Shown here one piece after another: positions 10,610-19,600 of a DNA stretch of 64,000 nucleotides. Both the position numbers and the translations under genes were made by a program. Source of the DNA: Piromyces finnis finn (lineage: Eukaryota > Fungi > Neocallimastigomycota). Within the stretch, counting starts at the first letter, position 1. Every line of letters begins with the position of its first letter. The notes under the pieces are model-generated. The model did no database searches and was not told the DNA's origin. It saw only the letters and a list, made by a program, of their open reading frames with translations. The stretch spans positions 2,542,001 through 2,606,000 of the forward strand of contig MCFH01000001.1 in the NCBI GenBank assembly GCA_002104945.1, in the 5' to 3' direction.

Positions 10610-13600
10610 ATGGAAAAGATCATTAAATTATTAAAAAATTTTGAAGTGGAAGATGAAAAAGGTAAAATTAAAGATATTAATTTTGCCAAAAAACTTTTAA
10701 AGAAAAAGGCTTTCTTCAAACAATTACCTATAAATAACTCTTATTTACCAAAGACAGAATGGTATGGAATAAATATTGAAAATGAAAATGATGAAAGTGA
10801 TGATGAAAATGATGACAGTGATTATAATATTGTATTAATTCGTATTTCTGACCTTATTCCACCACTTACTTATTATGAGGAACTTATTCAAAAAGAATAT
10901 ATACTTAACAAAGAGTTATTAGAGTATGGAATTGTTTCAAAATTCAAGGGATATTCTATATTTAATAAAAACAAAGTTGTTTCTATTTTTTATAGTCATT
11001 CCCATAATACTTTAAAAGAATATGCAAAAAATAAAAAATTGATAGATGTTGTAAAAGAACTAATTCAAAAACTTTATTTATTACATCCTGAAAATAGTAC
11101 TTGTTACTTATTACCTACATTATCTTCAGATAATATTTTATGGTCCAAAAATGATATGTATACTATCATTTTCACAGAGATATTTTTGTCTATTAATTCT
11201 ATTGATTCTGTAATCCGTCTTAAAGAGTTTCCTTCATCAAAATGGCTAATCCCTGAATTAAAACAATTAGATGAGTCTAATCAGTATACATTATCGTATT
11301 ATTCATCTATTCATTCATTTGGTTATGTTCTCTTTTACTTATTAACAAGAAAAGAACCATTTAAATCTGATGATGAATGGAAAAAATTTTTTGAAGAGAA
11401 TTCTGATGATAAAGAATATACTTTTTTCAGAGACATTGTTAAAAAATGTATTAATGCAAGTGAAAAGAAACCAGTGATGTTTTCATCATTGTATATGGAA
11501 CTTGAAAATGCAAATATCAGTATTTTCAAAAAATCCACATCATTTATTCAACAAAATGTTGTTAATTCTAATGAATGTTGTATAAAAAAGACCCCTGAAA
11601 TATATAATGAATCAAGCATGCAATCAATTCAAAGCTATGATGATATGACTTCAAGCGAAAGATTTAAGTATATCTTTAATGATTATGATAAAGAATCAGA
11701 ATCAATCAATAATCAAAATAATAATAATAATAATAATGATGATGATGATGTTAATAATAATAATAATAATAATGATGATGATGATGATGATGTTAATAAT
11801 AATAATAATAATAATAATAATAATAATAATAATAATAATAATAATAATAATAATAATAATAATAATAATAATAATAATAATAATAACAACAACAACAACA
11901 ACAACAACAACAACAACAATAACAACAATAATAATAATAATAATGGTAAATTTATTGTACCAAATGATAAATATTTAGATGGTTTTATTTTTAAAGATAT
12001 TAATGACAGTATTAAAACATCAATTTTCTATATACATATTGAAATTAAATTAAAAGATAAAATAAGAGATGAAATTGAAGTATATGATATATACAGACCA
12101 AATGGTTCAGGATATAAATTAATAAAGTATGAATATGACAATGATGACGATACGAAATATTTTTCAGTAGTACCACATTATATATTTAATGGAATTAAAA
12201 CAATAGAATTTGGTGTAAGAAGTTGTTTAAATATTAATAAAAAAATTACTTTAGCAGAACCAAAATCATTTAATAATAATAATGAATATTCAATTAAGCT
12301 TACAAATACAAAACCAGATAGAAATATTAATATATATAAACCAATTTATAAGAATGAGTTAAATTATCTTAGACAAGTATCTTTAATTAATCCAAAAAAC
12401 TATGAATATTCTTATCAATACATATATGAATTAGTAAATTCAGTATCAAACAATAATTTAGTCGATATAATATTGAAAACTGGATTTAATTCTTTTACTA
12501 AAATTTTAATTAAAATAATAAAATCTAGGAATTATTCATTAAGTGATATATCAGAGTATATTGATTCTAATTATAGTATTAACACACAGGAATATAAAAA
12601 TGCACCAAAGCTTATAAAATTATTAACAGAGAAAAAAAGAACTAAAGATATTGAACAAAAACCAGAAAATAATAATGTAGAACAAATAACTGTTGGAAAA
12701 AGAGATGAATTATTATGTGATATGGAATATTTGAATCCACTTGAAAATAAAACTGACCCCGAAGGTGATATTATTTCAGATGCTATTAAAGAGATGGAAA
12801 AGAAAAAAAGAAATTTAATTGATTATATAGATGAAAAGTCATGTATGGAAAAAATAGAAGAATATAATAATTCTTTAGAAGGTCAAAAAAGAAAATTAAC
12901 TTTAATTCCAACACCTGAAACAATTAAGAAAATAAATCAAATTTATCTTGGATTATTAACCAATACAGCCATAATTATACAGGGTTTTACTTCAGCTGGT
13001 AAAAGTTTCATTTCTACAATAAGTTCTGTTATTTGTAGAGGTCAATATCCAATTTCAACAGCACTTTCAGAAAATACAACAGTGGAAGATTTATTAGGAA
13101 GACTTATTATACAAAGAAATGAATCATCAATGATGTCTTTTGTTCAAGGAATATTATTAAAAGCTTTCACTCAGGGATTAATACTTATTTTAGATGAATG
13201 TGATTTAGCTAATCCTGAGGTACTTTCATGTATATTAAATTCAATATCTAAGGACGAAATTACAGTAAATAATAATACTTATAAAAAAAGGAAAGGTTAT
13301 AATGTTATATTAACTATGAATGGTGAAGCAGAAGGATTTACTAAAACACAAAGAAATGAACTTACTTCAAATATTTTATCTAAATTTGTCATTGTCAAAT
13401 TTGATAAAATGAGTAAAGAGGAATGTGAAATCATTTTTAAGGAACTTGTACCAAAAAAAGATAACTATAATAGTAATGTTCCTAATTTTGTAAAATTGCA
13501 TCAAAAATTATTAGACTATTCCCAAAAAACTGTAGATCCAATTGTTACCTTAAGAAATTTAAAAGCATGTACCTATTTATCAAAAGTCAATATACCAGTT

Positions 13601-16600: not shown

Positions 16601-19600
16601 CCTAGTTACAACAATAAATTGTATTTAGGTATTGAAATCAATATAATAAATAATTATCGTTCTATTGCAAAATCAATTATTATTAATAATGATGAACTCC
16701 AGAATGAATTAATTAAATTATACAATAAAATTTGTAAGAAACATAGAATTCCTGTATTATCATTTATAAGATGGTGTAATACAACAAAAAGAATTAATGA
16801 ATGTATTCAGGATACAAATATTAAACATATAGTTGGTATTGCAGTTCTTAGAAGTATATTTGATGGATATGAACCAAATATTAGAAAGAAAATAGTTGAA
16901 GGTTTATTATTTGACTATTTACCAGAAAAATTATATAATTTATTAACAAAAGACTCTAGAGATGTTGTTTGTGAATCCCCATTCATAATTAAAAAAGAAA
17001 GTAGAAATGTTACAAATGTTGTATCTATTTACAGTAATATTAAATTACAAGTATTTAATTCAAATATAAACAAATTAGAAGAAATAAATTGGACTAAATC
17101 AGCTGCAGATATGGCTGATTCCATATTGACTTCAATTGCTGCTCATACAATGTTAATATTTGAAGGTCCACCTGGAAGAGGTAAAACCGCCATTTCAATG
17201 GCAACATTTGAAGTTCTCGGTATAGATTATAAAAGAATTAATTTATCTCCTTCTACTACAGAAGAAGACATTTTTGCTAGAATAATTCCAAACGTTGTTA
17301 ATGAGGATAATATTAAAACTGAAATTCAAGAAGGTCCACTTTATCAAGTTTTAAGAAAAAGTTCAAATTCTATAGAATATTGTAAAAATGGATTATTATT
17401 AGATGAAATAAATCTAGCATCCAATGAATTATTGGACCAATTATATTCATTTTTAACATCATTATTTTATAAAAAAATATACTATACTCCACAAGGTGAA
17501 AGTTATGAAATTGGAAATATTGGTGTAATTGCAACGATGAACGATGCAAAGTTATCTAATGCAAGAACAACATTATCATCAACTATTTTAAATCTTAGTC
17601 ATACATTTAAATTACCTAATTATGAACCAGAAGAGATGATGATATTGGCTGAAAACATATTAGGCAGAGAAAAATTATTCAAAGATAAAGAATGTATGAA
17701 AAGAGCTTTAAATTGTTTCTTTAGCTCACAAAAGTATAAAAGTAATAATAACGAAACTGGAGGAGTTACATTAAGAGAGATATTAAAGTTAAGAGAAATA
17801 ACTAATAAGTGTCCAGATGTTCCTCTGGATACATTATTAGATTTGGTATTATGCACAAATATGTCAGAAGAAGATGCAATAAAATTTAAAAAAGAAAATC
17901 ATTTTACAACTACATTAAGTAATATAATACCTGAAATAAAGAACAATAAATTATGTTTTAAAGACTTAATTGAATTTGATTTAATAAGATCTAGATATGA
18001 TGGTCCAATAAATAAACAATTTACTTTACCAGAAAAGAATGCTTTGATGAAAATTTTAATAGGCCTTAAGGCTAAAAGAACAATTTTACTATCAGGAAAT
18101 ATTGGAACAGGAAAAACATATATTGTGGAATCTTTGGCTGAAATAATTGGTATAAAATTAAATATTATTCAATTTAATACAGAAACATCATCATCCGACA
18201 CAATAGGAAGACTTGAAATGAGTGTAGATTCAAATGAAGTTTTAGATATTAAAAATGAAATGAATAAATTAATGAATTTATTAATAGATGATGAATGGTC
18301 CAGAATAACTTCATACATCAACTTTATTAACAAGGAAAAATATAATTATGAAGGATTTAAGAAATTTTTTGAAGAGATATTTAAAGAAAATCCGTTAAAA
18401 CAAGATGCTGCCGAACAATTAAAAATATGTTATAATAAAATGAAACACTTTTCTACATTATCATGTACTAGTTTCGAATTTAAAAAGTCATTGTTAATTA
18501 ATGCAATGGAAAAAGGAGAATGGGTTTTAATTGATGATGTTAACTATGCTCCACAAGAAATTGAAAGATTAATGTCATTATTAGAAGAAAATTCTTCATT
18601 GACCATCTTTGAACAAAATCCTCCTGTAATGTATTCCAGACACATTATTGAGGATACTAGTTTTATGAAGTATAAACAAATTCATAAAAATTTTAGACTT
18701 TTTGTGATTACTTCTAATGAAAGTACATTATCCTCAGCTATTAAATCAAGGTGTTTATGTGTCAAACTTCAACCATTTATGGAAGCACAACATTATGCAG
18801 AACTCATGTTAAGTTGTCTTAATAAATCAAATCTTTCTGATAATGATATTATATCTACATCAACACATATTGGAAAGGCATTTTCTGATATTATAAAATA
18901 TGAAAAAGATGATGATTATATTCTTAAGAATTATAAATTAACTTCTGTTAATTTAGTAAATTTGTCAAATATTTTATTAAATTCTAGAGAATATAATGGA
19001 AAAACATTTTCTGATGGTATAAACTTTAGTATTTTTTCAATGTTTAATAAGAATGAACAATCTACAAGATTTATTGAAGGTTTATCAAAAGAAATTGATT
19101 TTAATATCACCGCCAATATTAGAATAATGAAGGATAAAAAACATATCTTAAACATGATAGAAAAAAATATATTAGAATACACTAAAATAATTTTAAAGAA
19201 TAAAAATAACTATAAAAAAATAAATAAAAAAATTAATACTAAATTAAGCTTCATATTTGAAAAACTTTATAATAAAAAGAGAATGGCAATACCATTAAAA
19301 ATTAGTAACAAAAATAAAAGTGAAATTTTTACATATATAAAAAATTCAAGAAATAATTTACTTAATAATCTAGAATCATTTACTTTAGCAGATATTGAAG
19401 AATATAAAGATTATATTGAAGAAGTTTTATGTATATTAAAAGAATTAGTTCAAAATAAAAAAGAAGAAATATATAATTATTTATATTATCTTGAATTTTT
19501 AAGTTTATTATTTATGGAATTAACTTCAATTAATAATACAAAAATTAAAGGACTTAAATTAAATACTATTGAGAATTCACCTGAATTTTTCTCACAATTT

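Follow-up and report, generated by a model that had tools for sequence, protein, structure and literature searches.

The window analysed here is a 64-kb stretch of the genome of the anaerobic gut fungus Piromyces finnis (Neocallimastigomycota), with a G+C content of 13-30%. Translation of open reading frames (ORFs) and a protein search identified in it one uninterrupted ORF of 6239 amino acids (aa) on the forward strand (10610..29329) that encodes a giant midasin-like protein; residue numbers refer to this ORF, which starts at nt 10610. A word-index protein search found the identical protein in P. finnis, BCR36DRAFT_408210, labelled only as a hypothetical protein. The public model is 6076 aa long, and its sole difference from the ORF is that aa 324-487, an Asn/Asp run, are spliced out. 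The reading frame is open throughout this homopolymer (window 11579-12070) despite the public-model intron, and the intron call may be an artefact.

The protein begins with a degenerate kinase domain, which is followed by six AAA_5 modules, a ~3300-aa tail and one or more VWA domains. The N-terminal protein-kinase-like domain (10610..11650, forward strand) matches Pkinase at an expect value of 0.003, under the Pfam cut-off, and appears to be without the usual catalytic motifs, so that it is probably a pseudokinase. P0025, a parabasalid relative described below, has a clear kinase domain (E 3e-30). The C-terminal VWA domain (28832..29134, forward strand; Pfam VWA_2, aa 6075-6175, E 6e-7) carries a DxSxS MIDAS motif, and two more VWA-like stretches can be read from the sequence upstream of it. 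The closest solved structures by sequence are midasins (6or5, E 8e-48), followed by the MoxR proteins CbbQ and NorQ.

AAA_5 (Pfam PF07728) scores above its gathering threshold (E 4e-74, 247.6 bits) in five stretches within aa 781-2760; module 4 is too degenerate for a separate match. Six tandem AAA modules in one chain (AAA1 to AAA6, or modules 1 to 6), all on the forward strand, are bounded by P-loops or P-loop remnants. Eighteen motifs that a preliminary description of this DNA had named in the modules were checked in the translation, and all are where it had placed them.

The odd modules have complete cis sites: P-loop Lys with Ser/Thr, Walker B Asp-Glu, sensor-1 Asn and lid Arg. AAA1 (12887..13732, aa 760-1041) carries GFTSAGKS (aa 792, nt 12983), LILDECD (aa 859) and ILSKF (aa 922), with K798, D862-E863, N904 and lid R982, and K925 at the finger position. 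AAA3 (14837..15808, aa 1410-1733) carries GSPGSGKS (aa 1441), ILIDEFN (aa 1508) and ILDEL (aa 1572), with K1447, D1511-E1512, N1558, lid R1631 and, at the finger position, E1575. AAA5 (17072..18001, aa 2155-2464) carries GPPGRGKT (aa 2186), LLLDEIN (aa 2262) and ILNLS (aa 2326), with K2192, D2265-E2266, N2311, lid R2389 and L2329 at the finger position. The translation of modules 1, 3 and 5 holds no other Arg in helix 4 (H4).

The even modules carry an arginine finger in H4 that would act in trans. AAA2 (13733..14836, aa 1042-1409), a predicted dead site, has GKNGSGLT (aa 1073), in which the P-loop Lys has become L1079, then VILDEIN (aa 1165) and LMNRF (aa 1233); its finger R1236 (nt 14315-14317) is assigned to site 1. 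In AAA2 the sensor-1 position is not conserved, and an insert in the lid region is acidic and disordered. AAA4 (15809..17071, aa 1734-2154), likewise predicted to be dead, has a P-loop one Gly short (GETSYKS, aa 1766), Lys-Gly in place of the Walker B acidic pair (LIIKGIN, aa 1911), a long helix-2 insert, and FKSRC (aa 1988), whose Arg R1991 (nt 16580-16582) is assigned to site 3. AAA6 (18002..18949, aa 2465-2780) has an intact P-loop (GNIGTGKT, aa 2496; K2502), an Asp-Asp Walker B (VLIDDVN, aa 2639) and IKSRC (aa 2711), whose Arg R2714 (nt 18749-18751) is assigned to site 5. The preliminary description had called the Walker motifs of all three even modules damaged. That is accurate for the lost Lys of AAA2, the broken motifs of AAA4 and the Asp-Asp of AAA6, but gives too little weight to the Walker A of AAA6, which is fully intact, and the Walker B of AAA2, which is Asp-Glu.

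The two types of module also differ in length. Walker A and Walker B lie 67 (AAA1), 67 (AAA3) and 76 aa (AAA5) apart in one type, but 92 (AAA2), 145 (AAA4) and 143 aa (AAA6) in the other. Extended helix-2 inserts in even modules, a trait of the midasin ring, are present; the insert of module 2 is short, and that of module 6 is predicted to comprise four helices.

The finger position used in the preliminary description was the right one: pairwise and multiple alignments place it at the second Arg of the midasin RxRF motif. In S. pombe Mdn1, mutagenesis showed the second Arg of R3, R4 and R6 to be critical for growth (PMC5116814), a result that fits the aligned midasin motifs FRNRF, LRNRF, FxNRF and MRNRG. 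The assumption that the finger of module n+1 completes site n is borne out by Rea1, in which Sosnowski et al. found that site n receives its finger from H4 of module n+1 (PMC6286127). AlphaFold models of two di-modules, AAA5-6 (mean local confidence, pLDDT, 84.5; global confidence, pTM, 0.81) and AAA1-2 (pLDDT 76, pTM 0.75), put the finger position of modules 1, 2, 5 and 6 at the C terminus of H4 or right beside it, immediately ahead of strand 5. The models match Mdn1 AAA3-4 as rigid di-modules (Z 24.4, 477 residues, root-mean-square deviation (rmsd) 3.9) and also superpose on Rea1 AAA5-6 (Z 19.1) and dynein AAA1-2 (Z up to 24.9). Foldseek ranked Rea1 and Mdn1 at the top. The motif-delimited modules and the di-module superpositions together predict a six-module ring of the midasin type.

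To describe conservation we used 23 non-identical fungal-type homologues, with counts taken over the sequences aligned at each position. Eight (ring identity 66-72%) came from species of Neocallimastix and Piromyces or from JGI/ENA data, and fifteen (identity 37-46%) from very AT-rich metagenome scaffolds; those of homologues P0016 and P0024 are ENA metagenome entries with 15-20% G+C. Within this set, modules 1, 3 and 5 show no variation in their cis residues except for two Asp-to-Asn changes in module 1. The sensor-1 Asn (TMN, TGN and TMN) and the lid Arg in (V/F)TLR are restricted to these three modules and do not vary among the aligned homologues. Finger Arg residues are kept in 21/21 homologues in module 2 and in 23/23 in both module 4 and module 6. 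The changes in the even modules are shared just as widely: the P-loop Lys position of module 2 is Leu or Val in 20/20, and Walker B is Lys-Gly in module 4 and Asp-Asp in module 6 in 22/23 each. The Walker B of module 2 reads DR, DN, DD or DG in the homologues, the second residue never being Glu, and the P-loop Lys of module 6 is present in 23/23. At the finger position, module 1 has Lys in 19 homologues and Arg in one, module 3 has Glu in all 23, and module 5 has Leu in 14, Arg in seven, Lys in one and Gln in one.

The alternating motif pattern is therefore real and conserved. The preliminary description had let it stand or fall with its retention among homologues, and nearly all key residues are invariant in the 23. 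If independence is assumed, the chance of an alternating set of cis motifs (2/20) coinciding with fingers on the next modules (1/20) is about 1 in 200; it is the near-invariance across the 23 homologues, which are 40-75% identical, that indicates selection rather than chance. In close homologues the even modules are 0.70-0.72 identical and the odd modules 0.73-0.77, which means that the dead modules are nearly as conserved as the others and are themselves under constraint. Residue E1575 (window 15332-15334), at the predicted dead 2/3 interface, is a separate curiosity: all 23 homologues have Glu where an Arg finger would be expected, and this Glu has been selected, the Arg not merely lost.

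These data make it scarcely credible that the gene is a decaying relic and its motif pattern the product of neutral erosion, an idea to which the bare "hypothetical protein" annotation might lend itself. The 18.7-kb ORF is still open in a region of ~20% G+C, the genome has a second, intact paralogue (contig C112, ~70% identity), the key residues are near-invariant, and the dead modules are 70% identical between genera.

We consider it likely, on the strength of the conserved motifs, that the protein is a giant single-chain mechanoenzyme with an AAA+ ring, related to midasin (Rea1/Mdn1) and organized as three enzyme-activator pairs. Complete ATP-hydrolysis sites are predicted at the 1/2, 3/4 and 5/6 interfaces only, since only sites 1, 3 and 5 combine all cis motifs with a trans Arg, as the preliminary description had held. 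Sites 2 and 4 have lost essential cis residues, and the modules opposing them, 3 and 5, hold Glu or Leu at the finger position. Site 6 is different. It has an invariant P-loop and an Asp-Asp Walker B, is opposed by a conserved Lys of module 1, and is probably a fourth site that binds nucleotide without normal hydrolysis. Its P-loop and the Lys facing it make a strict three-fold picture too simple. The proposed trimer of enzyme/activator pairs thus holds up as far as three seemingly complete sites with dead partners are concerned, and fails as strict three-fold symmetry, given the P-loop of site 6, the unequal inserts and the seven homologues with Arg in module 5.

Several observations weigh against three enzyme-activator pairs and deserve to be set out together. 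Site 6, with its Asp-Asp pair, P-loop and trans Lys, could hydrolyse slowly. The Walker B of AAA2 in the window protein is still Asp-Glu. The loss of fingers is not uniform, as the Arg of module 5 in 7/23 homologues makes plain. Site activities are read here from motifs. Finally, the odd modules have another Arg (R915, R1565 and R2319), 10 residues ahead of the finger position, invariant in these modules and aligned with the Arg of midasin GGR(K); the loop that contains it, between strand 4 and H4, is flexible and modelled at low confidence (pLDDT < 50).

Could this upstream Arg, R915 lying 10 residues ahead of K925 and its counterparts likewise, replace the missing finger of the odd modules, so that the even sites are not devoid of a trans residue? 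Its invariance, its alignment with midasin and its flexible setting would suit such a role, which we nevertheless regard as very unlikely. Sites 2 and 4 are without cis essentials in any case. Moreover, the family has kept the upstream basic residue in modules 1, 3 and 5 and lost it in 2, 4 and 6, and midasin has it in AAA2-5 but not in AAA1 or AAA6. Because this residue follows the activity of its own module and not that of the neighbour, a role in cis is more likely than one as a substitute finger.

A second alternative is a ring as asymmetric as those of dynein and midasin, in which one odd site dominates or site 6 hydrolyses, and the alternation is a by-product of decay. The invariant P-loop of site 6 and the invariant basic residue of module 1 that it faces would be expected of such a ring, as would the very different inserts of the even modules; the Rea1 and dynein rings are strongly asymmetric, and a sister family from parabasalids, taken up below, works with module 5 dead and two complete sites. 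In the fungal-type family, however, every catalytic residue is kept in all odd sites together with an invariant trans Arg, which argues that all three sites are selected. We therefore judge the asymmetric ring unlikely, and prefer three enzyme-activator pairs with a distinct sixth site.

The relationship of the window protein to midasin is close in architecture and distant in sequence. Both have six AAA_5 modules in one chain, and midasins are the best matches in the PDB by sequence as well as by Foldseek. Odd and even module types, long helix-2 inserts in the even modules, an H4 finger acting on the preceding site, and a long tail ending in VWA/MIDAS are also common to the two. Canonical midasin, however, has Walker A, Walker B and the Arg finger in AAA2-5 and no Walker B in AAA1 and AAA6; its hydrolytic sites are AAA2-5 and its fingers are in AAA2-6 (PMC6286127, PMC5116814), whereas the predicted sites of the window protein are 1, 3 and 5. 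Further differences are the N-terminal kinase-like domain of the window protein, its apparently several VWA domains against one, and a ring identity of only ~20%.

P. finnis also has a midasin of its own. A separate open frame of 5487 aa on contig C174 has canonical midasin motifs: Lys in 6/6 P-loops, Asp-Glu Walker B in AAA2-5, and RF-type fingers, which were found in AAA3-6. The window gene is thus a relative of midasin and not its orthologue. Of the features looked for in an orthologue, it has the C-terminal MIDAS (VWA) domain and has neither the AAA2-5 active pattern nor the position of closest counterpart in the genome. AT-rich composition as the cause of Arg loss was considered and ruled out, as the midasin of the same genome retains its fingers.

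The most distant match of the first search, P0025 (24% identity), leads to a family of ~77 proteins of ~6000 aa (P0025, P0037-P0113) with the same kinase/six-AAA/VWA architecture, found in the parabasalids Tritrichomonas foetus and T. musculus and in many metagenomes. Members include T. foetus TRFO_27550 and TRFO_17377 and several T. musculus proteins. This parabasalid family is sister to the gut-fungal one. One architecture is thus seen in two unrelated groups of gut anaerobes, which prompts the question whether genes have moved from one eukaryote to another. A literature search on midasin and Trichomonas returned no description of the window-protein family, and neither the family nor an alternating pattern in a midasin- or dynein-type ring was described in the literature searched, a limited library that gives weak evidence of absence. 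A search of the ESM Atlas returned generic AAA_5 fragments only.

Comparison of the two families suggests an order of events. In the parabasalid family modules 1 and 3 are complete, with Walker B Asp-Glu near-invariant in the first and invariant in the second, and sensor-1 Asn in both. The Walker B Glu is gone from modules 2, 4 and 6, module 4 has the same one-residue P-loop deletion, and the fingers of modules 2 and 4 are kept in all but one sequence, which has Lys in module 4. Module 5 appears dead, its Walker B usually being HN, EN, QN or similar and its P-loop Ser/Thr usually replaced, so that only two complete sites are left. Modules 1 and 3 mostly retain Arg or Lys at the finger position. 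Since loss of the even-module Walker B is common to both families, this decay would be older than their split, and the fingers facing dead sites may have been lost later, under relaxed constraint. With module 5 dead in the parabasalids, only the fungal-type clade shows exactly this pattern of three sites.

Taking all this further, we tentatively entertain, as a possibility still short of even odds, a hitherto undescribed superfamily of ~6000-aa proteins with kinase, six AAA and VWA domains in gut fungi and parabasalids, built on a midasin-type ring remodelled into enzyme-activator pairs joined covalently. In the fungal-type clade this ring would be a natural single-chain (AB)3 AAA+ machine, a motor of exactly three alternating sites with a fourth, regulatory nucleotide site at the seam; gene transfer between eukaryotes could account for the patchy occurrence of the superfamily in unrelated gut anaerobes.

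How old is the alternation of module types itself? The preliminary description had proposed that a di-AAA unit was triplicated. In profile-profile comparisons the best match of each family module is a midasin module of the same parity (1 to 3, 2 to 4, 3 to 5, 4 to 4, 5 to 5, and 6 to 2 or 6), and midasin modules also group by parity among themselves. In Rea1, the helical H2-alpha inserts are in AAA2, 4 and 6 (PMC6286127). As the odd and even types are common to midasin, any di-AAA triplication is probably ancient and older than the window-protein family. A maximum-likelihood (ML) tree of 72 modules and 178 columns recovered every module class and resolved no deep nodes. The preliminary description had looked to such a tree for odd-against-even clustering; approximately unbiased (AU) tests rejected neither the odd/even split (p 0.46) nor the midasin modules as one side, that is, separate expansions in the two lineages (p 0.16). 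The module tree therefore cannot date the triplication.

A triplication of an enzyme-activator unit within this lineage, after the split from midasin, would be in keeping with that second AU result and with the weak grouping of family modules 1, 2, 3 and 5 in the ML tree (88/92). We think it improbable, however, because the profile matches follow parity across the two families, with modules 4 and 5 going to midasin AAA4 and AAA5; because midasin modules, and the H2-alpha inserts of Rea1, themselves divide by parity; because the AAA1-2 model fits best on Mdn1 AAA3-4 and the AAA5-6 model fits Rea1 AAA5-6; and because modules 2, 4 and 6 each have a different kind of damage, which would not be expected if a single unit had been copied when it was already dead. 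What survives of the triplication proposal is an old (AB)3 origin in common with midasin, plausible on these comparisons; its lineage-specific form is not well supported, the parity types being shared with midasin. Such an origin does not explain the catalytic pattern; the alternation of active sites would have been superimposed on it later.

Among AAA+ systems with unequal sites, the closest mechanistic analogue of the window ring would be the proposed alternating (LAP1-Torsin)3 ring, with three active sites and a finger-donating, nucleotide-free "AAA+ activator domain" (PMC4358337). Torsin and LAP1/LULL1 are separate polypeptides of another AAA+ clade, however, so that the likeness is one of analogy and not of homology; in the window protein the pairs would be covalently fixed, and its "activator" module 6 retains a P-loop. 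Doubts have since been raised about the hexameric Torsin-LAP1 ring. By sequence, modules 1-5 would fall in the same enzyme-activator class, with Lys instead of Arg in module 1, and module 6 has kept its P-loop.

Other systems share single features. Pex1/Pex6 is an AAA+ heterohexamer that forms a trimer of dimers with catalytically unequal alternating subunits (PMC4490564), and is to that extent like the window ring; unlike it, Pex1/Pex6 is a double ring of two polypeptides from the classic AAA clade, both of which keep their D2 nucleotide sites. Cytoplasmic dynein is a single-chain ring of six modules that mixes catalytic, binding-only and dead sites, and its AAA1-2 superposes on the di-module models with Z 20-25, but the sites that work in dynein lie together in AAA1-4 instead of alternating (PMC4047620), and it has no VWA domain. 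NorQ/NorD and CbbQ/CbbO, with which VWA8 is grouped here, share the AAA_5 fold (NorQ, Z ~19 and rmsd 2.6; CbbQ, Z 19) and, as MoxR-VWA pairs, the coupling of an ATPase to a VWA/MIDAS partner (PMC9976466), although NorQ and CbbQ form homohexamers of identical active subunits.

A working scheme for the fungal ring would thus have three composite catalytic sites, at 1/2, 3/4 and 5/6, separated by two dead interfaces, at 2/3 and 4/5, and by the 6/1 seam, where one site would bind nucleotide and hydrolyse it slowly or not at all. For comparison, the AAA1 and AAA6 sites of Rea1 have been seen closed and ADP-bound (PMC6286127). In the history that we propose, the even modules would have been the first to decay, and the fingers pointing toward dead sites would have been lost later. 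If Rea1 and MoxR-VWA pairs are taken as a guide, the ring presumably couples ATP turnover to the tail and to VWA/MIDAS, which would pull on or remodel a partner.

The rest of the window and of the searches yielded a few further observations. Two adjoining ORFs of 293 and 930 aa (window 49348-53018), the second with an RVT_1 domain (E 8e-36), are probably a LINE-type retroelement. An ORF at 59870-61897 encodes a CotH kinase domain followed by four Chitin_bind_1 (chitin-binding) repeats, a locally G+C-richer stretch at 46490-47974 encodes a CBM_10 (fungal dockerin-type) protein, and the reverse strand at 4837-7644 encodes a protein of 935 aa with DUF4874 and DUF4832. Among the proteins retrieved, P0028 is a metagenomic protein of 4669 aa with five oddly spaced P-loops (aa 882, 1330, 1638, 2559 and 2894) and may represent another divergent single-chain AAA_5 ring architecture.

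Dynein and midasin are the main models for the way in which non-equivalent ATP sites cooperate in single-chain AAA+ rings. If our reading is true, the strictly separated, alternating catalytic and finger-donor modules of the window protein would directly test the idea that a ring can be driven from three sites that are not adjacent. The Torsin-LAP1 model, which is debated, would also gain a counterpart of fixed register. The locus reveals an unannotated family of giant proteins, with two paralogues in P. finnis and dozens of members in Tritrichomonas and metagenomes.

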